From positions 1,364,001-1,428,000 of the forward strand of contig OX337235.1 of NCBI GenBank assembly GCA_946965045.2: a stretch of 64,000 nt of DNA. Direction: 5' to 3'. Within the stretch, counting starts at the first letter, position 1. Each line of letters opens with the position of its first letter. The stretch comes from Epithemia pelagica (lineage: Eukaryota; Protista; Bacillariophyta). The notes below the pieces were generated by a model, which made no database searches, was not told the DNA's origin, and saw nothing but the letters and a program-made list of their open reading frames with translations. A program made the position numbers and the translations under genes. This document shows positions 803-51,924 of the stretch, piece after piece.

Positions 803-2877
803 ATGGTACCCATCGAAGAGCTGGCTAGCGTTGTTGCTGGGAAGAAGACAAGACAAGTTTCCAGTTCATCATGGTTGCGAACGAGTGCTGTTATCATAGT
901 TGCGGTGCTATTGAGCATGGCAAGGACAGCGCAGGCTCAAATTGGAACCGACATATGCGCATGTAGCCCAGCTACGTACACGTTTCAGGTTCGATTTGAC
1001 CTTACCTGTCCAGGAAACATCCAGGCAGACAATGGGATTCTGCAAACTGATTGTCAATTGCAAAATCAGGAGCAACCAGGTGACAACGAAGACTTCGTCC
1101 CAGTTTTTGTTTCTCAAATAACGCTTTTTGAACTTGGTGCGGAGCAACAAGTAATCGCAAGCCAACTATATACCGGAGATTTTATAAACGGGAGCACAAT
1201 CGTCTATACATCAGTCGTTGGGACGGATCCAAACTTGAACGAGCAAAATATTACTCAGGGCTTCCAATCAACCCTTTTGGGGCGTAACGCCGCTGAAATC
1301 GGCATTGAAAATACGTGGATTATTCTGTTCACTAATGAGTGTGGCGTTTTCCCACTTTTCACCGTTGGCGACCGAATTGGATGGCTGGAGTTAATTGATT
1401 TCACAAATCCGATCAATCGGTATTGTCCAGGTGAGGTAATCTGTGAGAAAGAGCGAAAGGCATATGATTCGAATCTAACCACTTTCTACGAACAGGTGTT
1501 CCGTCACCATCGCCGTCCAGTCGTCCGACAATATCAGAACAGCCATCCAACTTTCCATCGTTTTCCCCCACAGATCATCCGTCGGAAGTGCCTTCATTTT
1601 TACCCACAGAACATCCAAGTGAATCTCCATCTTTCACTCCGACTAGTCTCCCCTCGTTCTCGCCTTCAGCGCTTCCTTCGGTGTTCCCAAGTGCCAACCC
1701 GACACCCACTGCACCGACTACTAGCAGGCCAACCGAACAACCGTCGGACTTTCCAAGCGCTGCACCTTCAGGTTCAGATAATAAACCAACCAACAAGCCG
1801 ATACAAACAGACGAGCCAACCGGAAAGCCGACGGAAAAGCCCACGCCTGAATCTTGTCCTCCAGTATCTAAAGGCAAGGGCAAGGGCAAGGGCAAGGGCA
1901 AAGGCGGAAAGAAATCGGACAGTGGAAAGGGAGGAAAAGGAAAGAAATCAAAGAGTGGAAAGGGAGAAAAGGGAGGACAGGGAGACAAAGGAGAGAGTTC
2001 AAAGAGTGGTAAAGGAGGAAAAGGAAAGAATTCCAAGTCGGACAAATATGATGATGAGCCAACAAAAAGTCCTGGCCACAGCAAGAAAAGTGACTCGGCA
2101 CCAAAAATATACAAGAAGAAGAAAGAGAACCAGGACGATCGCGGGAAAAGACTCAAGCTATCGTCTGATGACTACAATCAAGATTCAAAGTCAGGTTCGT
2201 CATCGAGTGACAAAGGTCATTCTCCTGCTCCCGACTCTTTTTCAGATGTACTCTGCCCGTCCCCTGTGATCACAAAAAAGAAGCGAAAATCTATGACTAA
2301 AACGTTTGCGAAGAGCGAAGGCAAAGGGAAAGGCAAGGGAGGCAAAGGGAAAGGTAAAGGAAGTATGAAAATGGTCTCCGATGGGTCAGGGAAGGAATCA
2401 AAGGGGATATCCAAGGGAAAGGGTGATTATGAATCTACGGGCAAACCAAACGCGATGCCACCCCCAGTCTCGAAAGGCAAAGGTGCTTCAAGAGCTCCAG
2501 GGAAAAGTGGTAAAAAGGATTCATCCGGAAAGGGTTTTTCAATGTCACCCAAAAGTCCACATGTCAAGAACACCAAGGCATCTATCAAGGACGGTTCTAT
2601 GGAGAAGATTGTCAAATCATCAAGTGACAAAAGCAAGGGGAAAGGAAAAGGACAAGATTCAGGAAAAGGCATGGGAAAGGGAAAGGGAAAAGGGAAAGGT
2701 GGAGATTCTGATGATGAACCCTCGGAAGGGAAGAAAAGTCCAGCCCCTCACCCCCCAACGACCACGGAAGCGCCTGCGATATTTGCCACGGCAAAGCCAA
2801 GTCAGCCAAAAACAAAGTATATATTTGAAAAACCAGCGGAATCGTACGTTTATAGACAAGAACCCACGAGTGTTTAA
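803..2877 (+). CDS. Secreted 6-Cys-domain / PTS-linker / Lys-rich-tail protein, family copy A (exons 803-1430, 1496-2877)
   Basis: Hydrophobic leader ending AQA|QIG, then domain QIGTDICACSP...TCPG...TDC...FTNECGVFP...YCP. A phase-1 GT-AG intron (1431-1495) joins ORF 803 to the frame of ORF 1588. PSxxPT repeats are followed by a GKGKG/KSGK-rich tail. Confidence 0.85.
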
Positions 2878-3521
2878 CTCAAGTCTCGCCCTCACGAACA
2901 CTGCCTGATTGCTTTTTCTCTTTCGCCCAGACCGAACCAGAGACCCTGATTATTTATATGATTGACAAGGGGGAAAGGACACTCCAGCGATGGAAGGTGT
3001 ATCCTCGGCAAATGGATTGAAATACTGTTTCACTCACTCGCAAGACAAATGAAGATAAGTGCCGAGATCTCGTCAAGGTATATCAGTTCATGGAAACGTG
3101 AAAGGGGGATACATTTTAGTTTGTTTGAAGTTGTCCGTATTTGTACACTACATAAAATTAATTCTTATTTTTCGAGTAGACACTATTCAATATCGTCATG
3201 CATCCTCTGTTCGTATTGAACTTCTGAAAGTCATCAAGCTCGACCTGTGCTATGTTGTTCTTGGCGAATGAAAGGAACGTACAAGCCGAACGATGTCCAC
3301 ATCGCATTTGGCTTTCATGGAGGAGGACGTGCCAAACGTCGGCCAACAAGGTCGATTACTACACCCAGCGGCCTTTCAGTTTCTTACCAGCTTCGGTACA
3401 AGATACTCGAACAAGCAAGTATCTTCGCGACGGAGATTATCAATGTACACAAGGTGCATGCTTTCCGGACCAAGACCAGCTAATGGTTGTCCGTCACAGT
3501 TGTTGTTGGCACTCCTCGAAA

Positions 3522-5515
3522 TCACCATACGGTTAGAGAGGTGACTCGAACATACTCGTTGGAATCCAGTGTTTGGGCCCGAAACTCATACAACCCCTCG
3601 CTATTTGCTGCCCACTTATGACCGTTTGCGTGCTTCAAAAAGGCGCAATCTCGAAACCTTGTATAATTGTGCACGTTGACACCATTCACCGTCATGGAGA
3701 ATTTGGTCTCATTCCGTAATTCGTCCATACTCAAAACACCCCGCGGACAGCTCCAACCACATGTTGCCAAACAAAGAGCAATGTAGCCGTGTAAGGCAGT
3801 CGGGGACGACGAGTCGTCAAAGAATGATTTTTCGGCTGGATTGGGAAGGGTTAGCTTGGACTGTCCATACGAGTTGATGACGAAAAAATCAAGGTGGTCG
3901 ATTTGGACCGTATGGTTCGTGCAAAAGGTTTCGTACGAGCTGGCATCAAACCCCAATTCCATGCGTTCATTGGCGCGGTTACGAATCTCATTGAGGCCAT
4001 GACCATGGTCGTAACTGGTGTATCCTCCTTTGAGATCAGACTCGGTCGCGAGCCCATTGTAGCGCGTCTGCGAAGGAACACGGGCCGTTTGACAAAAATT
4101 GGGATCCCAATAAATGACTTGGGTAGGGATATCATCAATTTTTTCCAAATACCCAGGAAACTTGATATTACTCGTGTTCTTGCTCAACAAGTTGTGATAG
4201 TCCCTGTCCTCTTCCGCTTTCAGCGTATCCATGAGCACTTTCGGGTCGGAGCCTTTTTCAGCTATTAGAAGCAATGCATCATCAAAAACCTTAATGAGAA
4301 ACAAAGTGAGGAGGTTGCCATAAAAGGCATGCCATTTCCTGCCCAATACGAAAAAAGCAGAAGAAAGGTAAGAAACAATCCGAAAAAAAGACAAGACGAG
4401 ACAACTGGAGGACCGCGCACCATCCGGGGTGCCAGGAAGCCTTGTGCTTGCGCTTGTTGCAGGGTTCATCATCGGTAACGTAGGTGTATTTTTCGTGGTC
4501 ACAGGTTAGTTCTCCCTTTTCAATGTCCTTCCCGCAACGAAAAGAGCGAACGAATTTTGGCATTTGATCAATCTCTTGTTGCGTTTTGTCTGCTGTATCC
4601 GGAAACGTGTGGATCAACTTTTTGGTGTTTAACAGGAATATTGGAGGACCAAGAGGCTCCATGCTATAGAAAGCAGGTTTGGTATGGCCCATTTCAATGC
4701 CGATCAGTGCAAGCCGATTGGGAAGAATAGCACCACGGTGAAAGTACAACTCTGCCCTGTCATTGTCAGTCTGTCATACCAAGTTGTTCCACAACAGAAA
4801 TGGGGCGCACAGCACAAAAGCAATTTGTCAGAAATGTCAAGTAAGTTGATGGGACCTTCATCATCGATAAACAGTACGTACCCCCGTAGTCATTCCGTAA
4901 TCCCAGGACAACCTATCGACGTCCACTCCAAAAACTTTTTTATACAGCTTGCAATTCCCATTCCACAGGATGTGGCACCCATGACATAATTCCGGGCGGT
5001 CAAGTCCAATTCTACCGCCTCCAAGATGGGCGTACTTGCACGATCCTCCATGGTCGCCGTGTAGGATTCATGAAACAAATTTCCGTGACCGGCCAATGCC
5101 GAATGTCCACCCGTCGTCCACACAAATGGCCGCGGCTGGGCGCCAATTCCAAAATTTTCAGGGCAACTTGGCGCTGGACATTGTTCCAGGACCGGGTCGT
5201 TCCTTCCAAGGCGGACCGAGCAATCGATCGTTTGGTACCATCGACGACTTGTTCGAACTGGACCGCAACGTTCTCGCCTCCATAGTCCTCCGTCATTTTC
5301 GTCATGAACTTGGCTCGTTCCAATTGAAACTTTTCCCTTATCCGAGTCGTTGTGTAAGGACCATCACTTTGCAGCATTCAAGAGTGTCGTGATTCGCTGC
5401 GAAGGACTTGGTCATTGAGAGAAGCAAAGTTTGTGCGCAGCAGGTGAAGGAATGCACCGGTAACCAGTAAAATTGCAACACCAACAAGTCCCTCTTCGTC
5501 CATTTGAGGCGCCAT
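3522..5515 (-). pseudogene. Type II membrane SGNH-hydrolase-like protein of a diatom-type family, disrupted (exons approx 5515-4882, 4770-4421, 4338-3522)
   Basis: N-terminal TM segment (GLVGVAILLVTGAFL), then an in-frame TGA at 5378-5380. Motifs FVWTTGGHSALAGHGN, ARNYVMGATS, FGVDVDRLSWDYGMT and SWHPGWKWH lie in three different frames, needing 1-nt deletions near 5130 and in the T-run at 4936-4941. Two introns have canonical ends. Confidence 0.65.
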
Positions 5516-6067
5516 GATCAGAAGATACTCTCATATTGATTCGTTCTTTCATCGCAGACTGTGTGCCTGATGATTCTCATTGACCAAAAGATCAAAGATA
5601 AAAGAAGATGAGGTGTGTGTGTGTCTGTGTCGCAGTGCCATGTGATGGGGGGACGTCAAAAGAGTGACAGATTTTGGCGCTGGGATTTAAATATCAGAAT
5701 AACACCAACTGTACATTTTGATACTACCAAGGGGTTTGTATCAGTCGAATCTCTTTTGCCACAAAGAATCCTTTGACTGTCCAAAAAATCGGCTGGAGCG
5801 CGCTTGGCGAGTCTCAGTTTTATTTTCATTCCTACTGTTATCGCCACAGTAACGTTTACAAATAGGTTCTTTCACATTTTTCACATGCGGAAGCACCAAA
5901 ATCAAATAATCGAACCGCTCACAAATTTGTCGGTGGGTGTACCAAATCGGAGAGAGACGTGATGACAAAGGAACGGCATTCATGAAGTCGTCCGCATTCG
6001 ACTCCCACTCCTTTTCCTGAAAGCTCCTGAAAAATCACCATCACCATCAGAGCTCAAATTCAAGACA

Positions 6068-7964
6068 ATGACTTTACCAATGACGAGTCCTCGGAACGTT
6101 TGGAGGACCAAGGTGCTCCTGGCAATTGTCGTTTGGACCAATTTCTTTGCGGTCGTCTCGGGGCAAATTGGAGTCGATTTATGCGCATGTACTCCGTCGT
6201 CCTATACATTTGAAGTTCGGCTCGATTTGACATGTCCCGGAAACATTGACAGCAATCCTGGGATTGACCAGACAACCTGCCTCAGCCAAACGGAACGAGG
6301 AAATCCAAACAATGAGGACTTTGTACCGGTATCCGTCAGCACTGTGCAAATAACAGAAGCCAACGCTGGATTTCAAGTTGTCAAGATTGTTGAGTTCCAA
6401 GGAACAGGAGACTTTACGCAAGGCGACCTCATTGAATACACTTCTGTCACTGCCGAACGATCGGATCTCACCGAAGACGAAATTATCACCTTCCTCCAGC
6501 TCAACGTACAGGGACGAAACGTTGCCGGTGATGATATCAGCAACAATTTCATAATCCAAGTTACCAACGATTGTGGGGTGTTCCCAGTCCTTTCGATTGG
6601 AGATCGAGTGGGATGGCTCCGGATCGATGACGCCACATTCCCCCGAAATTTGTATTGTCCAGGTATGTGAAACAAGTGATTCTGCTGCACATTGAGTTTA
6701 CTGCGAAAATACTGACCGAAATGCCTTGACAGGAAATCCTACTCCGCTTCCATCGAGTAGTCCATCCCTATCAGGACTTCCTTCTGTCTCTCCCACGACG
6801 ATGCCGACGTCTTCTCCTTCATTCCATCCAACGTCAACCCCATCGACAACGCCCTCCTCCTTGCCATCATCTCTGCCATCCTTTGTTCCAACTACTCTTC
6901 CGACTGTAACACCGACATCCATGCCATCATCTGTTCCAAGTCTGGTTCCAACTGCTGTTCCTTCAATGCTCCCTTCGGTATTTCCTACGGTTCGTCCGAC
7001 TACAAGTGTCTTTCCCACACCGACGGAACCAACCACTGGGCAACCAACAGACGAGCCTACACCATTGGCCACCAGTTTACCTACCCCTCTTTCTCCAACC
7101 AAAATTCCCATTGAACCTGTTCCAACGACCGAGGCCCCGACGACTTTTTCCAAGCCCACACAAAAACCAACGGAAAAACCAGTTTATCTATGTCCTCCCG
7201 TTACACCAACCAAGCGTGGCAAAGAGTCCAAAAGTGATTCTATCGGTAAGAAATCAAAGAACTCCGACAATGGTAAGGGCACGAAGAGCGCCTATGGCGG
7301 AAAGAAATCGGATACCGGTGGTAAGGGATCAACGTCTTCTGGTAAAAAAGAAACTTCCGTTCCTGACATGCCCAAGAAAAAAGTGAAATCGAAGAAGAAC
7401 AGAAGAGGTCACAAACTAGAGGCTTGGGTATCGAATGAATCCAGAGATCTGAACGGCGCATACGAAGCTTACAGCCGTTTGTCAGGCCAGCGGAGCCTAG
7501 GATATGAGAAATCGTCTCCAACGAAGACAGACGAAAAGTCATCTAAGAGACAGGGCAAATCACCAGTTTCTCCTCCTAGTCTATGCTTACAGACACCTCC
7601 CCCAAAGAAATTGGCTCGGCGCCCCAAGGCTACTAAATCTCATCGGATGGAAAAAATTCCAAAGTATGGAAAGGGAAAGGGAAAGAAGTCTTCGTCGTAT
7701 GGAGAGGGAAAAAGAAAAGGAGCAACACAAAATGACCATGGGAAAAAAGGAATGTATACTGCGACACCGACAGTGTCGAAGGGGGAGAAAGCAAAATCGC
7801 AACCTCCAACAGAACAGAAGGACATGTCTAAACCTTCCCATTTGCCCACTTCGCGTCCTTCTTCCAAACCAACTGAAAAGCCGAAACAACAAGCGGATGA
7901 TTTGTACACCGATCCGCCAGTCTCCCCTTCAAAATCGATGAAACCCAAATCGATGAAATCCTAA
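6068..7964 (+). CDS. Secreted 6-Cys-domain / PTS-linker / Lys-rich-tail protein, family copy B (exons 6068-6662, 6733-7964)
   Basis: Signal peptide ending VSG|QIGVDLCACTP, with the same six Cys. A phase-1 intron 6663-6732 (gtatgt...gacag) links to the frame of ORF 6726. PS/PT-rich linker and Lys-rich tail. Confidence 0.88.
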
Positions 7965-9263
7965 GTGTATCCCATCCCACAGTTCACCTTGATTCCACTT
8001 TCCGACTTAAAACCTTTGTTGACTGTTCTTTGTCTTTAATTGGATTGTCAACGATGAAAAATAACCAATGAACGATCGTTAATGCTCATATGAATATTCA
8101 GATTATGTAAACCACTAACCCCAAAATATGTTGCATAGCTTGGTTAGGTCCTCGGCTCCCCGACCAAGAGATCTTCGAAGACGAGATTGTATCAACGACC
8201 TAGGTTGGCGTTGTATTTAATTTTCAGTTGCCAACTTGAACGTATCGTGCAACAGAAATGCTTTGGCCTTGGGTCTAAGTCAAATAAGACTGTTTATGTG
8301 AAGGTTCACATGAAACAACGATCAAGTCCAAGTGTAAGCAAGATGGGAAAGGTCTTCTATTACTTCCCTATTTGTTGCGTATGATGTTTTGACACGATCG
8401 TCCACTCTACGTTGAGTCGAAAAGGTGAGACTGCATGTTGCCGTTGCGATTTTTGCGATGAGAAAACAGAACGAGTAATAAATAAACGGAACTGTAGGTC
8501 ATCTACCCTACAATAGACATGATTCGGTTGGGTGTGTCGTGCAAAGAGCTTGACCAGACTCCTTCTTCCAAAGGGCACATGACGGCTCAATTCAATCCAT
8601 TGATCCCAAAGCAATTCTGGTCACAATGATGTCTCTTCATGCGAATTCGAGCTGGTTGGGCACTCCTTGCATGATGCTCTGCATTCTGGAAATTTGAAAT
8701 TTTGAGAGTTGCGGTGTCGGAATTCTGGATTTGTTGTCGGGAGCGGAGCTCGGATTTGATTTTGACAAAAATGGCGAAACAGATACAATTTGGCAAATAA
8801 ATTGGCTCATATTTCTATGTATTTTTTGCTTCAAACAATCCAAAATACTCGGGATTCCAATTTTACACATCGTTTTTCTGGTATTTCCTACGGACAAACA
8901 AAAACAACTTCGCCCTGAGATTTTGGGGGATTTCAGTTGTGATGTCTGACTTCAAACTTAATTAAGCCCTCTCGGTCTTGGTGTATAAATTTTTGGATGA
9001 CCGGGCTGAATTATTTGTCGGTCCTTTGTTGTGATTGTCCAATTTTTCTTAAAAAGGAGACTCATGATGTTGCCGAAAATCTATCAACGCTCACAAAATT
9101 GATCTGTATGGAGTATCCCGAAAGTCGAAAACTCCAACCATTGACATCCAGCATTATTGCAACCATTGAGCTCATAACACTAACCACAGTTCAAAAGATT
9201 GGAACTGGATCAAACAACAGGTCATTCGCATATCGATCTTCCTGGAGAAAGCACCAAGTCATC

Positions 9264-10900
9264 ATGAATGCCGACAGTGGGCCCAGGGCTTGGTCTTTTT
9301 CTACCATGCTTAAACTCTTTCTCACGATGACCTTACTCGGTCTAACAAGCGCTCAACATGGATCAGGATTGTGTTCTTGCCTCCCGAGTTTCATGACATT
9401 CCAAATTTTCTTTAATACAAGATGCCCAGGAAACATCATAGTGGAAGACCGACCGGGCATCAGCGAGACTGCATGCGAAGCTCTTAACCAAGACGGCACC
9501 CAGCCCGACGATGGCGACGATGTCCCCGTCACTATTACCAGCGTTCAGATTCTTGAGCTCAACCGCGAAGACCAGCCCCTTTCCCAGGAAACTAGGGATG
9601 GAGTTTTTGTCGACGGGCAAGAATTCAACTACACGTCAGTGACTGTGAGAAACCCTGATTTGGATGAAGCAGTCGGTGCTCTCCAAATCGCTTTGGATGG
9701 GAGAAATGCGCAAGGAGCTCAAATTATTAACAGCTGGATTATCAAGTTCACCAATGAATGCGGAATTTTTCCTCTTCTTGAGGCTGACGATCAAATTGGA
9801 TGGACCGTCTTCGTATCTTCCACTCTCCCCGAAGCCAAGTTTTGCCCAGGTATGTGACCATTGCATTCCATCTCGCACACCAGCAAATGATGGAATCCGC
9901 TAACCCTTTTATATTGTCAACAGGAGTTCCCACGAGTTCGCCTTCGGCCGCCCCTTCCCTTTCGGCCATGCCTTCAATGTTTCCCTCTGAAGAGCCATCA
10001 TTCTTTCCTACCGCATTTCCATCATGGTCGCCTTCATCCCATCCTTCCCTTGGGCCAACGGCAATCGATACTCCCCAAACTTCCAAGCCAACAAACCCAC
10101 TGACTGATAGCCCAACAATGAAGCCTACATCTAAGCCCACTTCTAAGCCGACTGAAGCCGAATGCCCTCCTGTCACACCCCATCCAACAAAAAAGCCGAC
10201 ATATGGTGGCAAGAAAGAGAAGAGTGCAGACAGCGGTAAGGGTAAAGGTGGAAAGGGTAAAGGCGGAAAGGGTAAGGGTAGCAAGAAGTCGCCTGCAAGT
10301 GGAAAGGGCAAGGGTGGAAAGAAGTCATCTACGGGTGGAAAAGGTAAGGGAGATACAAGTGGGAAGAAATCCGGTCTCCCTGAATACAAAGACAAGAAGG
10401 AAAAGAAAGACGACAAAAAGGGTGACAAGCTTATACTTAAAGCATATCGACATCTCGGGGCCGATTATGACGATGAGTACGACGATGATGATTATTACTA
10501 CGACTCTTCATCGGGAAAAGGCAAGGGCAAGAAGGACGAGGACTACGGAAAAGGCAAAGGGAAAAAAGAAAGTGTCAAGTCAGGAGGGAAAAAGGGTGAT
10601 TCCGATTACTCTGTTCGCTGTCCCGGTGTTATCCACGATAAGAAGGAAGTTCCACCCAAACCTGTGATGCAAATGTTACCCAAAAGTCCTAAGGCATCAT
10701 CTGGGAAGGGCAAAGGCTCAGGGAAAGGCGAAGGCAAAGGAATGGCTTCGTCTGGAAAAGGCAAAGGAGGAGAGTATTCAGGAAAAGGCAAAGGAGGAGA
10801 GTATTCAGGAAAAGGCAAAGGAGGAGAGTATTCAGGAAAAGGCAAAGGAGGAGAGTATTCAGGAGAAGGCAAGGGTAAAGGAAGACGTGCAGCCCGCTAA
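9264..10900 (+). CDS. Secreted 6-Cys-domain / PTS-linker / Lys-rich-tail protein, family copy C (exons 9264-9849, 9924-10900)
   Basis: ATG 9264 gives a leader ending TSA|QHGSGLCSCLP with six Cys. Phase-1 intron 9850-9923. The tail has GKGKGGKGKGG, RHL, a DYDDEYDDDDYYYD block and (GKGKGGEYS)4. Confidence 0.85.
10754..10861 (+). repeat. Coding tandem repeat, 4 perfect copies of a 27-nt unit (GKGKGGEYS)
   Basis: ggaaaaggcaaaggaggagagtattca at 10754, 10781, 10808 and 10835. Confidence 0.97.
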
Positions 10901-11096
10901 ACTCTGAACCCACGCAACACCAAAGCACTATTTTGACGACACAAATTGTCCCCGTCCTCCCGTGATTTTGGCAAATGTAAATTCGTACTGTCTTGCATGA
11001 TCCAGAAGAAATCTACAACTAGAGAAAACGAGATATTTGACATAAAATTACTCTTAATTGCAAATTTGAAGTTCACATGCTAGGCCACATGATTTT

Positions 11097-11197
11097 CACA
11101 GACCCAAATCAAACGTGTTGTTGTAACTGCTCTATCTCGCCTTTCGTTATTTCCACAGACCCAAATCAAACGTATTGTTGTAACTACTCTATCACGC
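11097..11197. repeat. Non-coding direct duplication, 44-nt core with 57-nt period
   Basis: cacagacccaaatcaaacgtgttgttgtaactgctctatctcgc (11097) vs cacagacccaaatcaaacgtattgttgtaactactctatcacgc (11154); 3 mismatches. Confidence 0.92.
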
Positions 11198-11212
11198 ACT
11201 TCATTTCCTTCA

Positions 11213-13735
11213 TCACGCGTTCGTGATCATTGAACTTATCATATTCAGGAGAGCATCGTCGTCTACGTTGAATTCTTCTCCCATGATATCCAGTTCGCGG
11301 TCGATTTCTCCTAGTTCCAATGCTTCGGCTTCTTGCGCTGACTCTTCCACCATGCGAGCACGAGCGTCACGGGCCCTTTCGGCAGCGACACAAGGACTGC
11401 ACGCCATCAGAACAAATCCCTGACAGCCACGGCATGAACAAAGGAGCGTTTCCCCAAGGTTAATAAAAGGTTCGCCGGGTCTTGGTCCACCCAATCGAGG
11501 TCGGGGGATTCCATGACAGCGCAACTTCACTGGTAACTTCCGGCGATGAATGGTCAAGAGCTTTCGTACAGATGTCAACGTGTCCAACACTTCTTCAAAC
11601 ATGGTTTCTTCCATGGCGCCAAAATTTTCCGTCCCTTTCATTGCATGCATGCCATTCAGCAAATGGCAGAGAAGAATGGTAGCGTTGGTAACAATGTGAT
11701 ACGTGGGCCCAGCATGGAACAACACCAGAGGGTTTTCGACCGTTGTGTTGCAGACCGAAAGAAGACTTTGGATCTGACTATCAGAGAATCCCCCGTTCCC
11801 GTCTTCGTCGCTATTCTCAAGAAAAGCGTCCATTGCCGATATAACGAGCTGCTGTCCTTCATGAACTCGTTTGTTCTTTGAAGAGTTTTCGTGCTGCTGC
11901 ATCAACGTGTAGGCAGAAAGAACCAGATTACGACTGCAGAGTTCATTCTCATGAGCCAGAACTGCCGTCGTCGTCGGAGTTTGGATGGTTTCCAATGGAA
12001 TTTCATTAAAATCCGTCGTTCCTGATTCCTTTGCAATTGTCGCGAACCTCTGGTTTGCTTGATCACAGCATGTCCGGATCGCACAGGCCAATGCGTCCAG
12101 CGACCTTGTATTCAAAGGAGCCTCGTTGTTGAGGTAAACGGGAGGGGGTCCTTGGATCCAATGCTTGTTCTTAGGATCGCAGGCAATGGACGCCGAATCA
12201 GTTTTTACATCAAACTTGAGCTCGGTTTGATTGGCGAACGATTGCCGAACTGAACCTGTCATTTGTGGAATTGCATCATCGATAGGTGGGAGCTGCCTAT
12301 CATTCCCATTATAGATCATATACGCCCAAGCGTCTTGATAAGAAATCGCCGATATCAGTGCAGTTGTTTCAGCAGTGTCCTGGAGCGACAGCGAATACAA
12401 GAGGAAATATAAGGAATGAACCAAACCTTTGACTTTTCACTCCATATGATCTCATTCATAAACGTACCTCGACCTTCGAGAGGTAGTTCATACAAACTTG
12501 ACGATATTTAAGATACCTCTGCATATCACCTCGAAAAGCCCGAAATACTCCGAGCAAGAAGTAGGCCTTTGCTACAATGGTCATTATTGATGGCTGCACC
12601 GGCTCCTGGACCGATTCACGTATACAGTGAACGACAGCATTACATAGTTCCATAGACAAACTCACTTCACCGTGTACTAGAGCCCCCAGAGCAATTTCCG
12701 CGAACCGAGATGCACTAAGGGCTGCCAAGTGAGTACCTGGAATCATTTGGGGAGTCATACCTTGAACATTCATGCGAGAACAATACTCTTCATCTGAAGG
12801 AGTAGGCGGAAGACGAAAGAGCTCGTCAATCGAAAGTTTGTAATAGGACAGAAGACGGGCTCCTTCACCATCCGATTGTTCCAATAAGTGCGTATGGTTG
12901 GTGATGGTTCGGGGGATTCCTACTTGCTGCTGTTGCCCACCTTGCTCATCACGTTTCATTCGTTGTGAGGGTTGCATTTGACCGACGAATTCATTTTCTC
13001 GTTTGTCGACCTGCGTTCCAGTACCCATTCCATTCAATTGTTGTTGTTGTTGTTGCTGCTGTTGTTGTTGCTGCAACTGTTGGAGCATGTTGATCTGTTG
13101 CTGAAGTTCTTCTGACGTGGCCCCGTTCGTCTGAACTTGAAAGTTAGAATTTGCAGGTTGTTGATTGTTCATAACAGAAGCAAAAAGGTTCCCATTCATA
13201 GGTTGATGATCCGATACAATCGTACAGGTCGCTGGGCCGTGGGCCGACGGCCATTCCGCGTTGGCCGAAGGTTGTTCCTGCTTCTGCTGACCCAAATTCG
13301 CCTCACTGAACTTTCTAGATGATGCCCTCCTTGGAATTGGACCACGCCTTTTGGCGGGCGAATATACACAATCAAATTCCTTGATATCAATCCCCTCGAT
13401 GCTTTCAACGTACGGAAAGAACAAACACACCATTCGTAAGATCCAAACATCTCACTTTTCCCCTCCAAAAACTGTTTTCATTCTCTGATTTCCTGTTTAT
13501 TCGAAAGTTTATTGTATCACACAATGCAACGAACCACTCGTGCTTCTTACCTCGTGAGTTTGTGCTTCTTCATGTACTTGGCAGCACAGTTGCTGCAGGG
13601 ACGCTTTCCATCACATTTGGTCTTTCGAGCACGGCAACGATCACAACTTGCGCACAACGCTACACTGCTCCCACTCTTTCGAAGGCCTCCGGTCGAAGCC
13701 ATGTTCGAATCGTTGACACCGTTCCCCACTTCCAT
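11213..13735 (-). CDS. Zn(II)2Cys6 binuclear-cluster transcription factor (exons 13735-13551, 13401-12468, 12379-11213)
   Basis: CDRCRARKTKCDGKRPCSNC is the canonical Zn2Cys6 motif. Poly-Q linker. Introns 13550-13402 and 12467-12380 restore one reading frame across three track ORFs. Confidence 0.88.
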
Positions 13736-24026: not shown

Positions 24027-26106
24027 TTAGTTCCATCGACGGATATAATAATCATCTCCTGAATGGCCCTTCCCCTTGCTCGAAGAAGGTTGCTTCTTTC
24101 CCTTTCCCTCGCTGGATCCAGGACAACGGGTCGGACTTGAATCCTTCTTTGATAGTTTTTTCGAGTCTGCCTTTTCTTCCTTCCCAGATCCTTTCTCGTA
24201 GCTTGAATCCGAAGTCTCGTAAACGCGTCGAAGGTGATAGCCGTCGCCGGTGCCTTGTTGACGCTTATCTGGTGCAGGTACTTCTAGAGATGCATTCAGA
24301 AATGTTAGAGGTCTGGAATTATGGTAGATGCCTGCTGGTCTCGGAAGAAACTTACCATATCTCAACTTGCGATCTTTGGCATGATTTTAAAATCAAAGCG
24401 TGAGACGCAATCTCTGAGACTCTCATAACAGTCACCAATGGCACTTACCGTCTTCCGGTGTATCTCTGTAATTGCCATGTTTCTTCTTCGACGTGTATTT
24501 GATATTGTCTTTCTTTCCGCTTTCCGTAGAATCCTTCTTCCCCTCTTTCTTACCCCTGTCGTCGCCGTCGTACTTCTTAGAGTCCTTCGACTTGTTTGGT
24601 TCCTTCTTTCCACCTTTACCACCTTTACCCCAGGGCGGACTCGGAGGGCAATGTTTGGGAGAGGGTGGAACTTGTACTGGTTTCATCGTTGGTTTCATCG
24701 TTGGTTTCGGAGTCGGCGCTTGTGTTGCTGCGCCTTGAGTCGGTTTCTGTGTGGGGGCTGGCGTAACATCCGTCGGCGCTTGTGTGGGAGAAAATGTTGG
24801 AGCCAAAGTAACGAGTGGACAAAACTGCTGTTGTGGGTCTGAAACTCCAGTCTATATCATGATTCAGCATGTGAGAGATCTTTGTTGTCTGGTTATGTGC
24901 CGGAAATGGTTTCAGTGGTGTACTTACAATGTTTGTGGGGCCAATGCTGTCCGCGTCGGTTACAAGGGGGAAGATCGTACAACTTTGGTCAAATCGTAGA
25001 CTCCACGTAACCCGAACTGTTTCGTTAAGTTCATTTCGTCCCTCCAGAGTAGTCTGGATTCCAACTGGAATCGTGTCTGCATTCAAACTTGGGGCCGTAG
25101 CTAGGATAGACACGAAGGAAATTGTATCGTCGTCTTCGAATGGTCCTGTTTGGACGTCCTGATTCACAATCTCATTATTTCGGTTTAATTCCAGGATCAC
25201 AACAAGGTCAACCACCACAAACTGGAGATCGGTGATAGATGACGCAGGAATGTCAGAGTCAAGCGGAGGAACTCCAACAGAGATACATTCACTTTCGACA
25301 ACCTCTGGAGGACCAAACGTGTTGTCGTCGCACGTCAACTCGAATGCAAAGGTGAAGTCCCAATGACCAGGCTGGCATCCACAGAGATCAACTCCCACTT
25401 GAGGTCCGACAGTTGGGCTCAGTGTTGGTTCCTCGGTAGGTAGGAACGTAGGAGCAGGAGATGGGGCATCTGTGACGAGTGGGCAAAGTTCCCGGGGCGG
25501 GTCGGCAACATCCGTCTGTCGAGAAAAATCGTGAGCCTCGACAAGTCAACCAGAAAAGGGAACACGTTTCTGAATAGTTTCACTTACCACAACCGTCGCG
25601 ACAGCTGTTTCAAAAGGTTCCACAACAGGAAACGCATTGCAGTTGTTGGAAAAGAAAAGGGACCACGTTGCTCGTATTCGTCGGCTCTCTGTGTTGTTTC
25701 CGAAAAAGTTGAGTTGAATTGCTTTTGGCAGCGTCGTCTCGTCAAAGTTCGTAGATGTAGCTAGTACGGAAGTGTAATTAAAGGGATATCCATCCAGGAA
25801 GAGTCCGTCCAAATTCTTTTGTTGCAATGGCGTATTGTTCTGATCCAATTCGAGCACTTGTATGAGTTCGACAAAGGCAAATTCGAGATTTGTCTCGTCG
25901 TCGTTCAATTCACGTCCAAATTCGAAGCAAACAATCGGTGTCTCTATGCCAGTTCCAGGACCTGATTCGAAAGATACATCATCGCAGGAGAGGCTGAAAT
26001 CAAGCTCGAAATCATAAAAGGAAGGCTGACATGCACATAAATCTCCAATCTGTGCTTTGGCGGCTGCAACTAAGCACAGGAACAGAAGCGTTCGCAGTCG
26101 GGTCAT
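24027..26106 (-). CDS. Secreted protein with two 6-Cys domains and Lys-rich tail, family copy D (exons 26106-25588, 25515-24928, 24851-24449, 24373-24356, 24283-24027)
   Basis: Signal peptide AKA|QIGDLCACQP; second domain QVGVDLCGCQP. Introns have gtaagt donors and frame-preserving acceptors (phases 0, 0, 1, 1). Tail with GKGGKGGKK, KKEGKK and SSSKGKG. Confidence 0.8.
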
Positions 26107-29016: not shown

Positions 29017-32000
29017 CTACGATTCTGAGCACAGTGAAGGAGACGATTCTTTTTTGCCATTCTTTTTGCCTGAATCACTTTTATCCTTCTTGCCGGAATC
29101 CGAGATGGTTTCTTTGTCTTTCTTCCCGCTGTTCTTCCATGAATCATAATATGGCGCGTTGTCTCGTCGATGGGCTTTGAGCGGAATGGTTTGTTGTCAA
29201 CATGACAAAAGGACACAAAAAGGCAACGTTTTCGTTCAAAATATATTACCGTCAGAAACATCCGGATGATATGGCACCATAATGTCATTTCTTACCTTGC
29301 TCAACTTGATCGACTGAAGTTTCTTGGACTTGCCTTCGCCAGTTGTCATCCGTCCTTTTCTTTGCAGATTTGTCGCTCTTCGGACTCCTAGTTTTGTCCT
29401 CCTTAGACGATTTGTCGTCCTTGGTATCCTTGGGGCTCTTGTATGGATGGTCATCTGCTCCTTTGCCTCCCTTTCCACTAGAGCTTTCCTTTGTTGATTT
29501 CTTTCCTTTCGATTTCTTGTCTCCCTTCTCTTTCTTTCCTTTGGGGACTGGAGTGCATGCTGTAGGAGAGGACGTGGGCTTCGCAGTCGGGACTGAGACC
29601 AATGGACAAGTCATCTCTGGTGGATCTGATACTCGCGTCTATAAAAAATAAAGTCAGAAAAATTGCTTTGTCTTCCGGGCAACGAACAGCATTTTGGGGG
29701 TTACTTACAACAGTAGTGGCAACTGTTTGTTCGCCTCCTTCAATAACTGGAAAGACCTCACAGGAGTTTGAAAACTTAATGGACCAAGTTGCTCGTAGAG
29801 TCTGGTTAGAGGATCCTCGCCCCTCGAACGTCACAATGATCACTGCCGGAAGTGTCACAAGCGTAAAGTTTTTGTATTCGGCGAGGACAGAACGGAAAGT
29901 GAACCTATCTCTATCCATAATGCCTTCAATGGATTCCTGCTTCAACGACCAGTTGAACCGGTTGAGCTCTACAATCTGAATGGAGTCAACATGGGCAAAG
30001 GTGTCATTTCGCCCATCTTCAGAAGCGACAAAGCATGTTTCTTCGGAGACACCATCAGGTCCAAACGCATCTCCGATTGGGCAGGGAAGGGAAAAATCAA
30101 GCATGAATTCCCAGAATGATGGTTGACACGCGCAGAGCCCAGACGTTGGCTGTATTGTCGGTGCGTTGGTTGTCGGCGTAGAGGAAGGTTCAGCACTAGG
30201 TTCGCCTGAGGCCACGACTGTGGGTGGAACAGTTGGTAAAATGGTTGGCACAAATGAAGGAATATCACTCAGAACATCACTTGGAACATCACTCGGAACA
30301 TCACTCGGAACATCACTCGGAACATCACTTGGAACATCACTCGGAACATCACTCGGAACATCACTTGGAACATCACTTGGGAAAGAGGATGGATAACCAC
30401 TGGGTACAGAAGAGGGAAAAGATGAAGCTGTTCGACTAGGCGCATTGGAGGGAGTCGTCGATGGCACCGCCGATGGTGAAACGGAAGGAGCAACTGACGG
30501 TGATAAGGAGGGAGTAGCCGATGGTTTGAAAGATGGAGACGTTGATGGAGCAAGAGTAGAAAGTGGACATAACTCTTGAGCTGGGGGCACAACTTGTTGC
30601 TAAAGTGAAGAGAACGAAACCCGTGAGAGAGACCATTTCGTGCTCGAATATGCCTGAAACAGAAACACTTACCACTAGTGCCACAGCTTGAACTTCACCC
30701 CCACTAATAACAGGGAACACGTCGCACTCGTTGGTAAACCGATACAGCCACGCGGCTCGAAGACGATCCCCAGCTGCGTTGAATCCATTGATAGATGCTA
30801 GAAATGCCTGGGGAAGGTTTTGATCGGTAACATTTTCAGGTTCATTCAATATAGATTGGTATGTGATCGTTTCGCCGTCGGCGATGTTCGGAAAACTTCT
30901 TGGGTTCAACCTTATGTTGCCTTGGGCCTCGAAAAGCACGACGTTCACTGTTCCAGAGAACGTGAAATCGTTTGGATCCGCAGCGGGAATTGCAAGATTG
31001 CTCACTTCGCAGTCTTGATCTTCAATGCCTGGGGACGGTAGGACGTTTTGTGGACAACCGAGACTATAATCAATCTTGATTTCCCACTGAGCAGGCTGGC
31101 ATCCACAAACGATGCGGGAGGGTTGCCCACTTGGTGTTTCAGAAGGATGAGCACTTACTGTAGGGAATGTACTTGGAATAGAGGTGGGAAAGTCACTTGG
31201 TACCGTCGACGGGTAGTCAGTGGGCAAGCCTGAGGGATTCGCACTCGGGGCCGAAGAAGGGTCTTGACTAGGAAGAAATGATGGGAGTTCACTGGGTACG
31301 ACCGAGGGTAGAGATGAAGGGATTTCACTGGGTTCATAAGAAGGAAGAAAAGATGGGTTTTGACTGGGTGAAAATGATGGCAAGTCACTAGGTTCGACCG
31401 AGGGTAGAGACGATGGTGTTGTACTTGGCTCATGCGATGGAGTCCAAGAGGGAGTCGTTGATGGCAACATCGATGGGGACGTGGAAGGAGAGCTCGACGG
31501 AGATAACGAGGGAGTCATCGATGGTTCCGACGTTGGTGACGTGGAAGGAGAGCTTGACGGAGAGAAAGAGGGAGTCATCGATGGTTCCGACGTTGGTGAC
31601 GTGGAAGGAGAGCTCGATGGAGATGAAGAGGGAGTCATCGATGGTTCCGCCGATGGTGAACTTGATGGAACCGGGGTTGACAGCGGGCATAACTCCTGAG
31701 CTGGTTGCACAACTCGTTGCTACAGAGAGGAACGAGTGAGACAAATCGTTCTGTGCGTTCTCGCATGCCCTTGCCACACACCCACTTACCACCAGTGTTG
31801 CAGCTTGTACCTCACCCCCACTTATAACCGGAAATACATCGCACTCGTTTGTAAAGACATAAAACCACGTGACTCGAAGAATATCTCCAACAGCGTTGAA
31901 CCCATTGATTTGAACCAATATTGAACCAGGAAGGGTTTGCTCGGTAACACTGTCAGGTTCATTCAATACAGATTCATAAGTAATTATTTGCCCATTCACA

Positions 32001-32305
32001 AGATTGGGAAAGGTTTTTTCGTTGTTCTCTGGTGGTCCAACTTCCAAAATCCGCACGTTCACAGTCCCCGAGAAAGTGAGGTCACTTGGATTATTACTTC
32101 CAAGATGAAAAACGGTACAGTCTTCTTGTGAAATTCCTGGGGACGATGGCGCAACAGGTGGACAATCGAGACTGTAATCAATCTTGATTTTCCATTGAGC
32201 TGGTTGGCATCCACAGAGCCCACCAAAGTTGGCATGTGTCTCAATTGACAAGAGACTAACGAGAAAGAGACTTCGGAAAAGTCCCTTGACATTGTCCATG
32301 CTCAT
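29017..32305 (-). CDS. Secreted protein with three 6-Cys domains, long PS-rich linkers and Lys-rich tail, family copy E (exons 32305-31790, 31719-30673, 30599-29709, 29638-29296, 29174-29017)
   Basis: Signal peptide THA|NFGGLCGCQP; further domains IVCGCQPAQW and GLCACQPSFW. Three phase-0 introns with gtaagt donors at the same domain position, plus a phase-1 intron. The last exon (AHRRDNAPYYDSW...SGKKDKSDSGKK...LCSES*) is not in the ORF track. Confidence 0.8.
30264..30380 (-). repeat. Coding minisatellite, about 10 copies of a 12-nt unit (PSDV)
   Basis: atcactYggaac repeated on the + strand; translates as (PSDV)n on the - strand in copy E. Confidence 0.95.
31478..31657 (-). repeat. Coding tandem repeat, 3 copies of a 60-nt unit (20-aa PS/T repeat)
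   Basis: gacgtggaaggagagct... recurs at 31478, 31538 and 31598; encodes SPTSEPSMTPSxSPSSSPST. Confidence 0.92.
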
Positions 32306-41157: not shown

Positions 41158-41481
41158 TAGTCATGTGAGGAGCTTACAAATGATGATGACAACGTCGTTC
41201 GAACGGTTTCCGTCGCTAGTTAAAATATGTGTAGAACCTTGTCTGTTCGCCGAAGAGCATGATATACAAACGCTCCTAACCTGTCCTTTGAAAGAAGGGT
41301 GCTGATAGACAGCTTGATATACAATAACCTTCGGTCTTATACTAACCAGTACCAGGAGTAAACAAGAGGTTAGATCAATATGCTCTATTATATGAATAGC
41401 TTTTATGTACCAAAACGTCTGGATTAACTTTGAACTAACCAGCACTGTGTTTGTTGGTTGGTCATCGTTATCTAGGAATGT

Positions 41482-47827: not shown

Positions 47828-50684
47828 ATGTTTCAATATCAACAACGGCAAAAACAAAACGCAACCATGTTGAGGAACCAAACGCTGGATGATTTTGACA
47901 TGTCAAGTGTGAGCATTGTCCTGTGTTTTTCGGCGTTCGTTTGAGTGAATCGTTCGTTTGTGGTATTCGTTCTTTGGTTTGGATGATTAAGCACCGTGAT
48001 CTCATTATTTCCTTCTTCCGTGATTCCATAAACAGGAGAACGAAGATGACATTGGGGCTTTGGGGAGTATCCTGTCCTGGGATGAAGATGAGGACGATGA
48101 AGGCCAGGCTGTAAACCATTCGGCTGCAGCCATGAATGTAGCACTCCGAGAGCGAGATTCTGCTTCCGGAACTTCTGCTCCTCCCGATATGGTTCAGTTT
48201 TCAATGAAAGATGGGGTACCGCAATTCAATTTCCTGACCAATTCTGCCTCGCTAATGGCGAATGGACAACAGGCTGTTAATGCGGTTGGTTCCACACAAC
48301 AATCCCAACAGAACGGCGGAGGAACGGATTCCAGTTTAACCCTACAATTACCAATGCCCACCCCCATTTCCAAATTCAATAATTCGTCGTCTTTTCCGTC
48401 CTCAACACAGCAACATCCACCACCTCGTCAAGACAATGAGTCTTCTTCACAGCAGCAAAAACTTGACATCTCGATGCAACCGATAAACAACAATAGCACG
48501 AACACAGCAGTGAATGCAAATTCGGTTCAGCAAATGGTGTCTCAGCAACAATCGCAACCAGGTTTGGCGGCAACGTTCACACAGCTTTTAGCGCAGCAAG
48601 CGGGGACGCTTCTGCAGCAACACCAGCAGCAACAACAAAATCAATCGGCGCAGCAACAGCAAGAATTGCAACAAGCGGCGAACCAAATAAACGCCTCACA
48701 GTCTCCGCAAGGCACTGTTGCAGACCCTGCTTCGGCTCAGCAACAAGCTCAACAGGCCGTTCTCCAACAGGCGCAGCAACAGTTGCAGCAAGCGGCACAA
48801 CAGGCTGCGCAGCAACAAGCCCAACAACTGCAGCAACAGTCCCAGCAAAACAACCAGGTGCAACAGGCACAAAACCAAATGCAACAACAGCCTCTTCAAA
48901 TGCCATTTGGGAACGACCCCAGTGCCTTTATTCAACAGTTGCAGTTTGCTCAATTTCAACACCAGCTGCAACTGCAAGCCCAACAACAGCAGCAACAACA
49001 ACAACAATCCCAAAGACCGACTTTTGCCGTGGCCCCAACACCTGGAAGCAACCCTGCTGGTGTGCAGTTTGCTCAACCACCAGCGGCCCCAGCATTGAAT
49101 CCAAGACCCCAACGGGAAGGGCCCCCTCCAGCAAAGCGAGCAAAGAAAACCAAAGCACTGCCCGCACTGAAACCTGCGTCAAGCAGTAGGGAATCGAAGA
49201 AACCCGCTCCGACTCCTACACCAACTCCATCTCTACCAAAGGCTGGAGTCGTTTCGGCGAGTGACACGGATTGCGAAGGCCCTAAGAAGACAGCCTCATG
49301 TTCCAGCAGCGCAGGAAGCGAGGCAACGCTCTCGCAACCACCAGCTGGTTCCAAGAAACTAGCCAAGCATGAAGTGATACAGGACCATAATCTCAATGCC
49401 GATGAAAAGGCACAGGCCAACCGTGATCGAAATCGAGAACACGCCCGGAATACTCGCTTACGGAAAAAGGCCTACCTCGAGAAACTGAAAGCAACTGTAG
49501 AGGATCTCTGTAGAGAACGAGATACTCTGGTATCTGAGCGTGCTGGAGCGGCTGGGCTTCTGGTGGAGATGCACAACACCAGAACCGAAGTTCTTATGTC
49601 CTTCTTTGCTCTACGATCCTCCAACGAAAAAAGAAGAAAGCTTTGGTCCAGTATCCTGGATGAAAGCTGCTTTACATGCATCATGCCAGTTACGCCATAT
49701 CGTTCATTTCCTGCTAGCGAAGTCCAAGTCTCCAAGTGTCAAAGGACTGTTATGGGTATCGACGCAATGATGGCTGATACAGCGTCGTTGCACGTGCTTT
49801 TCCAGTCACTGGTGGATAGAATACGATTTCCGAACGGCAAGATCGACTTCCGCTACACGTTAGTGACTGAGGAATCTGTTGTGGCAGGAAACCAAATGAT
49901 GGCACGATGGGTAATGTCCACTGTGAATGCGACGAAATGTGGAGCATTGACCGAAGTTTCAAAACAAGGAATGCTCTGTTGCAAATTCAACTCGGCGCAC
50001 AGAATAACGGGATTGGAACTCATGTTTGATGTCATGGCTTTTATGTTGCAGCTGAAACAAGCTGCAGGGTCAGACAGTTTCTCTGTGATACCAAATACCG
50101 TACAAACATGTCAAAGAACGTTTGACAAGCCCATGGTGATGACACTGGCAACTCCTCCCTATACAATTGTTCAAGTGAATAAGTTGTGGGAAGAGATGAC
50201 AGGATATTCGTCTGAAGAGGTTGTTGGCAAGACATCATGTGCGATCCTGCAAGGCCCCAAGACTGAGAAGAAAGCAATACATGAACTGATGGAAGAAATC
50301 CGTTTCAAACGACCTGGGACTGCACATGTGCGGAACATCAAGAAGTCTGGCCAGGAGTTTACACATGCAATTCTTGCCTTCCCGCTAAGCACTGACTCCA
50401 GGGTTACGCATTATGTGTCGCTCTCGAATCATGTTGAAAACCTTCCATCGTCTGATGAGAGTTCCGCAACCATCCCGAAAGTACCAGAGAAGCCGTTACA
50501 GCAACAGCAAGTCACCCCGTCTCTGAACCAGAACAGTTCCGCTCCGCAGAATGCGATACCTCAATTATTTCCAACACCATCGCCATCAACGAGTGTGTTC
50601 CATCCACAACCTCAGTCCGTTGAATCCAGTAACACGCTGATGGCACCCCCTCCGGCCCAAGCTTCAATGCTTCCACCCTCCTAG
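47828..50684 (+). CDS. bZIP-PAS transcription factor with Gln-rich N-terminus (exons 47828-47908, 48036-50684)
   Basis: bZIP basic region ANRDRNREHARNTRLRKKAYLEKL; PAS/LOV-like PPYTIVQVNKLWEEMTGYSSEEVVGKTSCAILQGPKT. The phase-0 intron 47909-48035 supplies an ATG (47828 or 47867). Confidence 0.85.
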
Positions 50685-51078
50685 TCGCGGGGACTCATCA
50701 CCACGCCTCAATTGCGATGTCTCCCCGCTTTCATCTTCCAAGTTGAAACACGCCTCAGCTCAAGCGACTCCGACGATCACTCCAAGCGCCCACTAGAGAA
50801 CAAGTTTTCCACCCGACCAACGAATTTGACACTCGAAATTCATGATATCTAGTAGAGAGGGAAAGAAGTGTTTGATTTTGCTTCTTATTCAAGTTTGATG
50901 TTCATTCTATATTCCGCTCGAGATCTGTTGAGGCCTGCCGCCCGCTCATTGTACATATTGCGTCCATCGGCCCACCACTGCATGTAGGTTCAGTTCTTTT
51001 GCCTCCTGAACACTTGCACCATTCATGTAGATAGCAAGTCTCATCATCATAAAGATACCAAGTTTCATGCTTCTCCCT

Positions 51079-51924
51079 TCACGTCAATCTTGTTCGCTGT
51101 TGGATGTTGTGGTCGTTGCTTGTCCCGGTTCGTGGTGGCGGCAATATGGGAGAAGAAGTCGGTGATGGACCTGTTGGATTCTGACTGCATGCAACAATCT
51201 GTAAATAAAAGAAATGAGATACGAATGTGTTTCAAATAATGAACGAACCGGGGAAGCCAAGGCCAGACACTGACGACATGTAGTGGAGACTCACAGTGTC
51301 CGCCCAACCGGCCGAGACAGTCACTTGAGCAGAGTTTTGGACACAGATGCTTTCGCCTCCAGTCAGAGAAAACGCCCAGGATTGAACAATGCTTTCCTGA
51401 TTGTTTCCATTGATCGCTGTGGCAATCACCTGCAAGCCTCGAGATTCCTTTGGCTCAATGCTCTCATACAGTACGGAATCTCCCGTTTGGAAGTTTCCAT
51501 CAATCATCTGACGAGCCAGAACATTATACTCTAGATTGAGCTCCAACAGAACCAAACTGTTGATTGTCACTGGTGCCTCCATGTCGAGCGGGAGATTGGT
51601 GCCATTCCACGAGTATTGATTGGGGTCGGGAATGACAATACACGTTGTCTCGATCCATGGGTTTTGCAGTGGTTGCGGTGGTCGCAACTCACAGGGCAGG
51701 GCCAGATTAAAGACCAGTTGATAGAACAGGCGATCGCAGGGCCGACAGGAGCCGCCTTCATTCCAGAGTTGTCTTGCCTTGCTGTTATTGACTGTATCTC
51801 CGAAACAATGCGATACCAATGTGCTACACCAGAAAAGGCCAACGAAAACAAGGATCAAGGGCCGGCTGGTGAAGCCAGAGACGACGCCTTTGTCCGAACC
51901 AGGGAGTAAAAGAAACGGATTCAT
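51079..51924 (-). CDS. Divergent single-domain, tail-less member of the secreted 6-Cys family, copy F (exons 51924-51295, 51198-51079)
   Basis: Signal peptide, ARQL, then CRPC...FYQLVFNLALPC...TTC...VLLELN...FQTGDSVLYESI...LQV.ATAING...QSW.F..C. A phase-0 intron lies at the same site as in D/E, followed by a last Cys and a short PT stretch. Confidence 0.7.

Follow-up and report, generated by a model that had tools for sequence, protein, structure and literature searches.

A pennate-diatom family of modular proteins with a six-cysteine, C2-like head domain: candidate anchored surface or matrix glycoproteins in Epithemia pelagica

Here, we describe six genes, named A to F, in a 64,000-nucleotide (nt) stretch of the Epithemia pelagica genome (assembly GCA_946965045.2, contig OX337235.1, forward-strand positions 1,364,001 to 1,428,000; hereafter the window), which encode modular, secreted-type proteins built on a globular domain of ~165 residues with six cysteines. 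The domain belongs to a large family that has so far been found in pennate diatoms only, is transcribed, and is set in a conserved design of head, stalk and tail. We propose, with a probability of roughly 0.55, that the six genes and a seventh just upstream of the window are paralogs encoding secreted modular glycoproteins whose polycationic tail fixes them to the wall or matrix while the head is displayed on the stalk. Surface or matrix glycoproteins with a polycationic anchoring tail are the best reading of these genes. That the window encodes secreted-type proteins on a six-Cys domain lacking a Pfam assignment had been put forward in an earlier, sequence-only reading; this description is upheld, and NCBIfam yields no match either.

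The domain copies were identified by cutting six of them by hand from long open reading frames (ORFs), building a profile hidden Markov model (HMM), and searching it against all stop-to-stop frames of both strands. Nine segments of the window were matched and no others, with one copy each in A, B, C and F, two in D and three in E, thus reproducing the copies, numbers and coordinates of the sequence-only reading (Table 1). Eight of the nine have expect (E) values between 1e-35 and 1e-72. The ninth, in F, reaches 4.5e-6 with the six-copy HMM and 1.4e-12 with a profile of 108 family members (profile positions 11-136); in it C-x2-C replaces C-x-C, and on these scores it is a true but divergent family member. 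Among the 108 family domains, columns C7, C9, P11, C24, C39 and C137 are invariant, and E65, S94, G117, N119, N135 and P141 nearly so. The motif string noted earlier, opening with C-x-C-x-P, recurs both in the window alignment and in the family consensus. The count of exactly six Cys per domain also holds overall, but in D, E and F it is reached only after splicing, the sixth Cys (in the context ..ELCPL.. or ..VAC..) being encoded in the exon after the intron.

All proteins have predicted signal peptides, judged by eye from hydrophobic N-termini and a conserved junction in which ..A/G is followed by Q-I-G. On this basis A, B, C and D have Gln at the predicted +1 position, in agreement with the four genes previously credited with an N-terminal Gln. 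The head domain starts directly at the predicted cleavage site, and the window proteins have no hydrophobic or transmembrane segment after the signal peptide.

How large is the family? Word-indexed homolog searches return few relatives, and its size becomes visible only by exhaustive profile search, which finds, among clusters at 50% identity, 1078 with E<=1e-3, 746 with E<=1e-10 and 214 with E<=1e-30. Most cluster representatives are short first-exon calls from genomic or metagenomic contigs. Source names were looked up for ~40 matches, only a handful of which carry an organism name, and all of these are pennate diatoms, six raphid (Epithemia clementina, two Entomoneis, Mayamaea pseudoterrestris, Fistulifera solaris and Pseudo-nitzschia multiseries) and one araphid (Grammatophora oceanica). 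No centric or non-diatom source occurs among the ~40, from which absence elsewhere does not follow. The order of head, Pro/Thr/Ser (PTS) stalk and basic tail, as originally recognised in the window, recurs in full-length members from other diatom genera.

Pfam and NCBIfam give only noise for the window domains, for ten full-length homologs and for all 108 aligned members, and a profile search of Protein Data Bank (PDB) sequences returned one meaningless match (E 0.87). The earlier view that the globular domain is not a described family thus stands as far as curated models go; it does not stand as a claim of novelty to databases, which hold more than 1000 clusters, including two members labelled in UniProt. 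Searches of the literature on frustule, pennate, lysine-rich or motif wording found no published description. As judged from sequence libraries and paper searches, the head family, its fold class, its breadth among pennates and the Cys-framed (Gly-Lys)n tail appear to be undescribed, while the general kind of protein is already known: modular glycoproteins with a Lys-rich region, secreted to the diatom wall or matrix.

An AlphaFold2 model of the B domain, computed with the 108-sequence alignment, is of high confidence (predicted local distance difference test score 93.9, predicted template modelling score 0.89) and consists of eight β-strands, with DSSP assigning a single 4-residue helix, after β5. 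Its structural neighbours are C2-like domains (PI3K, PLC-δ, NEDD4, Munc13 and cPLA2). Membership of the C2 family finds support neither in a sequence-profile match, there being no Pfam C2 match, nor in a structural Z well above background, and unrelated β-sandwiches would be expected to show similarity of this order. C2 domains are, moreover, cytosolic and without disulfides, whereas the head is of secreted type with six Cys. Foldseek against the PDB gave no match at E<=1e-3 (template modelling (TM) score ~0.26), a structure search of the ESM Atlas gave only unrelated bacterial matches at TM<=0.44, and two ESM Atlas feature searches gave no usable match. Since the similarity values may reflect only a common arrangement of strands, we call the fold a C2-like β-sandwich and nothing closer.

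The gene models are of two types. A, B and C each have one phase-1 intron, in the Gly codon after the last Cys-Pro, while D, E, F and the upstream paralog have a phase-0 intron ~15 residues before the last Cys, with a GTAAGT donor in D and E and GTGAGT in F. Because of this placement, an internal exon of D or E comprises the last Cys of one domain, the PTS linker and the bulk of the next domain, a symmetric unit that can multiply through exon duplication. The product of gene A, if left unspliced, is identical to the 486-residue protein call P0001 on ENA contig ctg1336l.

Transcript evidence comes from four public runs (X1-X4) that contain the B-C region, whose contigs were compared over positions 5600-11400. 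Contigs of X1-X3 are DNA-like, being collinear with the genome without skipping the introns of B and C. Those of X4 are confined to the two genes (6008-8363 for B; 9272-10292 and 10315-10794 for C) and skip 70 nt in B and 74 nt in C; both gaps have GT..AG ends and coincide exactly with the predicted introns 6663-6732 and 9850-9923. We treat X4 as RNA because its contigs skip introns as RNA would, and B and C as transcribed and correctly modelled. Of the splicing check proposed with the sequence-only reading, this covers the introns of B and C, which lie in the stretch over which the contigs were compared. The same contigs correct the start of gene C, previously placed at the ATG of the ORF (8997): the transcript contig begins at 9272, and the start lies near 9306 (9264 at most).

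The runs also differ from the window at many single bases between 5985 and 10153 (for example 6113, 6127, 6140, 6205 and 6430), consistent with allelic or strain variation within genes. At the 3' end of gene C (10750-10865), the assemblies of all four runs are interrupted by short contigs of very high depth; exon 2 ends here in a terminal repeat of a nine-residue Lys/Gly/Tyr unit, present four times in tandem, and the interval is probably a collapsed or length-variable tandem repeat. In gene E, the PTS linker of exon 3 (29900-30300, minus strand) carries at least seven perfect tandem DVPS units, which is a recent internal expansion of the stalk.

The regions that follow the head are compositionally extreme. 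In A, B and C, the three genes with fully modelled tails, the stalk spans 79-143 residues and is 59-67% Pro+Thr+Ser; the tail spans 245-350 residues with 20-24% Lys, 9-24% Gly and 11-16% Ser, a net charge of +33 to +47 and an isoelectric point of ~10. Motif counts were compared with 2000 shuffles of each tail. GKG occurs 26, 4 and 28 times in A, B and C against 2.3, 0.4 and 3.6 expected, an excess of 7-11x; the tails are therefore built of (Gly-Lys)n runs. Counts of KxxK, which the sequence-only reading had taken as a silaffin-type signature, are no different from those of shuffled tails, and GKG is the over-represented unit instead. Non-overlapping windows of 14 residues with at least 5 Lys number 8, 3 and 7, again equal to shuffled tails, so that they reflect composition and not a spaced motif. 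RXL processing, which that reading named for silaffins, cingulins and silicanin, finds no site after the signal peptides, and the 0, 2 and 1 RXL occurrences in the tails of A, B and C are about what chance would give.

The tail also has a conserved Cys framework. After the head, the window genes encode exactly two Cys. So do most of the examined full-length homologs in which this region contains Cys at all, including several metagenomic members and proteins of Epithemia, Entomoneis, Mayamaea and Fistulifera. The first has a 'CPP'-type context exactly at the stalk/tail boundary and the second a 'CP(E)P' context further on, both followed or flanked by basic blocks. Such conservation speaks for a functional module and against drift as the origin of the tail, and the two Cys may form a disulfide loop or an inter-chain cross-link.

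In light of this architecture, how might the proteins work? Each would carry a cleavable signal peptide, followed from the mature N-terminus (usually Gln) by one to three heads of ~165 residues. The head, an eight-stranded C2-like β-sandwich in the model, may hold its six Cys in three disulfides, in which the N-terminal CxC would probably be tied to the C-terminal Cys and to the one that follows strand 7. The PTS stalk, presumably O-glycosylated and extended, would keep the head away from the wall, where it could bind or cross-link another matrix component. The tail of A to E, framed by two Cys and filled with (Gly-Lys)n, would fix the protein to a polyanionic matrix, for which frustule silica and an acidic polysaccharide coat are the candidates, and disulfides through its two Cys may provide additional cross-links. 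Secretion, O-glycosylation and disulfide locking are predicted because established rules apply to such sequences; a biosilica or adhesion role we infer from composition and architecture.

In T. pseudonana, pentalysine clusters (5 Lys in 12-14 residues) and lysine-enriched regions have been found to target proteins such as silaffins and cingulins to biosilica (PMC9650480). Regions of this definition occur many times over in the tails of A, B and C, as a matter of composition, which would make anchoring to silica or to an acidic organic coat the most economical mechanism. Several points weigh on the other side. The diatom in which Lys clusters were shown to target proteins to silica is centric, not pennate (PMC9650480), and the RXL sites typical of silaffins and cingulins are missing. 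Nor is the tail obligatory, since F is without one and in some homologs it is Arg-rich or weakly basic. Glycosylation, like the signal peptides, was judged by eye, and the run type of X4 is not on record, its RNA nature being deduced from the spliced contigs.

Fungal adhesins of the Als, Flo and Epa types offer an analogy of architecture: a β-sandwich at the N-terminus serves as binding head, the stalk is rich in Ser/Thr and glycosylated, and the C-terminus anchors the protein to the wall. Their anchor is a glycosylphosphatidylinositol remnant cross-linked to glucan, whereas here it would be the polycationic Cys-framed tail, and there is no homology. A possible but doubtful reading is that the head constitutes a fold family of its own, ancient, pennate-specific and only topologically C2-like, and that stalk and Cys-framed polycation serve as a general means of displaying binding modules on the silica wall, with the tail in or on the silica and the head exposed.

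The proteins might instead be secreted components of mucilage or adhesive (pads, stalks or trails), an explanation that stands close to the anchoring one and that we nevertheless hold to be unlikely. The Lys/Gly(/Tyr) tail would then act as an adhesive or coacervating module against anionic polysaccharides or the substratum, and extensibility would come from the PTS stalk and six-Cys heads, as has been suggested for the six-Cys domains of unknown function (DUFs) of Craspedostauros trail proteins. The tails of C and of the upstream paralog do carry Tyr-bearing Lys/Gly repeats, a composition found in other underwater adhesives, and the family's span across pennates includes the pad-forming araphid Grammatophora. 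In addition, diatom trails consist of PTS-rich modular proteins with six-Cys repeat units (10.1101/2023.03.06.531300), and in CaFAP1, CaTrailin4 and Ca5609, as in the family, a signal peptide precedes an alternation of PTS stretches, presumably O-glycosylated, and globular six-Cys units of ~200 residues. These units are, however, unrelated in sequence to the head, and the three proteins have no polycationic tail, are far larger and contain choice-of-anchor A (CAA) domains. The CAA model (PF20597) matched in none of our Pfam scans, GDPH not being among the models scanned, and the proteins described here are small (250-700 residues) beside megadalton trail proteins. The trail-protein DUFs were considered as relatives and set aside: DUF2 is unrelated, and the family motifs are absent from the sequences of the whole supplement, in which the DUF1 alignment is unreadable (10.1101/2023.03.06.531300). 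Less likely again is a silaffin- or cingulin-like function in morphogenesis, in which the tail is processed, modified and occluded and directs silica deposition, while the head is a pro-domain or organises matrix within the silica deposition vesicle. Like the family, silaffins and cingulins have a signal peptide and low-complexity regions rich in Lys, Gly and Ser, of the pentalysine or lysine-enriched type (3-8 such clusters in each of our tails), and the Tyr/Asp patches of gene C resemble theirs. They lack a globular head and a PTS stalk, though, and show no sequence homology; the family for its part is without an RXL propeptide site, repeats GKG without enrichment of KxxK spacing, has only moderate Ser, and includes the tailless F. 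No named match came from centric diatoms, which also make silica, and this argues for a pennate-specific structure and not for core silica chemistry; together with the absence of processing sites it makes a direct role in silica morphogenesis less likely.

UniProt automatically names two Fistulifera members 'Spondin domain-containing protein', and a spondin-like gene is reported from all pennates and not from centrics (PMC9724779). This raised the prospect that the proteins are spondin-type matrix ligands with a strongly divergent F-spondin (FS) domain as head, possibly the extracellular partner of raphe actomyosin motility, a link proposed for the spondin-like protein of Mayamaea (PMC9724779). 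The FS domain of F-spondin and mindin (PF06468; PMC3117680) is indeed extracellular, of ~170-200 residues, and an eight-stranded C2-type β-sandwich with six Cys, an N-terminal Cys cluster before β1 and the last Cys after β8; it too carries N-glycosylation sequons and has a similarly weak Z to ordinary C2 domains. The head model has eight strands and C2-like neighbours, and its Cys are in analogous positions. Against this, Spondin_N (PF06468) matches 0 of 108 members even at E<=10, none of the window domains (E<=1) and no full-length homolog, including the UniProt-labelled Fistulifera protein (E<=0.1); NCBIfam gives no spondin match either. Spondin and mindin chains are likewise missing from the 50 best structural matches and from the profile search of PDB sequences. 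FS domains have PSPDW and DAGTD motifs and a two-helix insert between β2 and β3 (PMC3117680); the motifs are absent from the family consensus and the insert from the model, and the N-terminal cluster is CCxC in FS and CxC in the head. FS domains are fused to reelin-N or thrombospondin repeat (TSR) domains, the head to a PTS stalk and (Gly-Lys)n tail. The Mayamaea protein has a transmembrane segment, unlike the window proteins, and the family is present in the non-gliding araphid Grammatophora. The UniProt name probably came from a PROSITE profile, and we regard an FS origin, unconfirmed by sequence and structure, as very improbable.

Table 1. Positions of domains, genes, exons and introns of the six-Cys family in the window, with the genes lying between the paralogs (PTS, Pro/Thr/Ser).
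Feature	Position	Strand	Description
Domain A	938-1447	+	HMM match
Domain B	6164-6667	+	HMM match
Domain C	9351-9854	+	HMM match
Domain D1	25549-26052	-	HMM match
Domain D2	24901-25401	-	HMM match
Domain E1	31766-32233	-	HMM match
Domain E2	30661-31122	-	HMM match
Domain E3	29673-30146	-	HMM match
Domain F	51280-51762	-	HMM match, weak with six-copy profile
Gene A	803..2877	+	669-residue model; sequence-predicted
Gene A exon 1	803-1430	+	signal peptide and domain 938-1430
Gene A intron	1431-1495	+	phase 1, within Gly codon after last Cys-Pro
Gene A exon 2	1496-2877	+	109-residue PTS stalk, CPP junction, Lys/Gly/Ser tail, net charge +47
Gene B	6068..7964	+	608 residues; spliced contig of run X4
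Gene B exon 1	6068-6662	+	signal peptide and domain 6164-6662
Gene B intron	6663-6732	+	70 nt, GT..AG
Gene B exon 2	6733-7964	+	143-residue PTS stalk, CPP junction, basic tail, net charge +40
Gene C	9306..10900	+	506 residues from Met 9306; spliced contigs of run X4
Gene C exon 1	to 9849	+	domain 9351-9849
Gene C intron	9850-9923	+	74 nt, GT..AG
Gene C exon 2	9924-10900	+	PTS stalk, CPP junction, (GK)n tail with Asp/Tyr patch
Gene D	24027..26106	-	two domains; sequence-predicted, conserved GTAAGT donors
Gene D exon 1	26106-25588	-	signal peptide and D1
Gene D first intron	25587-25516	-	GTAAGT donor
Gene D exon 2	25515-24928	-	sixth Cys of D1, short PTS linker, D2
Gene D second intron	24927-24852	-	GTAAGT donor
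Gene D exon 3	from 24851	-	sixth Cys of D2, PTS, CPP junction, Lys-rich tail
Gene D further tail exons	down to ~24027	-	tentative
Gene E	29017..32305	-	three domains; sequence-predicted
Gene E exon 1	32305-31790	-	signal peptide and E1
Gene E intron 1	31789-31720	-	
Gene E exon 2	31719-30673	-	long PTS linker and E2
Gene E intron 2	30672-30600	-	
Gene E exon 3	30599-29709	-	PTS linker with DVPS repeats and E3
Gene E intron 3	29708-29639	-	
Gene E exon 4	from 29638	-	sixth Cys, PTS, Lys-rich tail
Gene E tail exons	down to ~29017	-	tentative
Gene F	51079..51924	-	~249 residues, divergent single-domain; sequence-predicted
Gene F exon 1	51924-51295	-	domain with C-x2-C
Gene F intron	51294-51199	-	phase 0, GTGAGT donor
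Gene F exon 2	51198-51079	-	sixth Cys and short PTS stub; no Lys-rich tail
Seventh paralog	~690 nt upstream of window position 1 outward (L001:1-1507)	-	head-to-head with gene A
Gene between paralogs			flavin adenine dinucleotide (FAD)-dependent oxidase, fumarate reductase / aspartate oxidase type
Gene between paralogs			LMBR1-like membrane protein
Gene between paralogs			GT1-type glycosyltransferase
Gene between paralogs			short-chain dehydrogenase/reductase (SDR)
Gene between paralogs			PDZ protein
Gene between paralogs			CTP synthase
Gene between paralogs			aureochrome-like bZIP-PAS gene
Gene between paralogs			amino-acid transporter
Gene between paralogs			AAA ATPase

The six genes form two tandem groups (A-B-C and D-E) and an outlier, F, with unrelated housekeeping genes between them (Table 1). 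We therefore depart from the sequence-only reading where it spoke of a six-gene cluster or system: these are dispersed paralogs in ordinary gene space and not a co-functional locus. The seventh paralog has a clear family domain (E 3e-50), a D/E-type intron before its ..SLCPL.. exon, a PTS stalk and a Lys/Gly/Tyr tail of repeated KGYG-type units. In a quick, midpoint-rooted FastTree phylogeny, not tested further, A, B and C group with orthologs from other assemblies, E1 and E2 with multi-domain Epithemia proteins, and D1, D2 and E3 with a two-domain Entomoneis protein; on these groupings the paralogs are old and not the result of a recent local burst.

Some other ORFs of the window were also recorded. 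A group-1 glycosyltransferase-like ORF (33393-34883, minus strand) lies directly upstream of gene E on the same strand, which may be coincidence. Two adjacent long ORFs (11213-13433, minus strand), probably one gene, contain a poly-Gln tract and have no Pfam match. An ORF on the plus strand (48060-50684) encodes a basic leucine zipper (bZIP) region followed by a PAS domain similar to light-oxygen-voltage (LOV) domains, which we take to be the aureochrome architecture typical of stramenopile blue-light receptors.

Little is known of the proteins by which the pennate frustule is joined to its organic coat, mucilage and the substratum, and the families described so far are few and restricted to particular species. 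The family presented here is large, extends across pennate genera, is transcribed and has a confidently modelled head, and thus provides a well-defined target for tagging, knock-out and wall proteomics. No curated domain entry covers it, which makes a new Pfam entry an option. Should the tail turn out to anchor proteins to silica or matrix, it could serve to immobilise proteins on diatom silica. If the head is a fold of its own displayed on the wall, pennates would possess dedicated wall-anchored receptors for adhesion or recognition (of the substratum, of mucilage, between cells or in mating), and the tail would be a natural tag for silica display. Our findings are of solid interest for research on the diatom cell wall and adhesion, and hold no surprise of principle.

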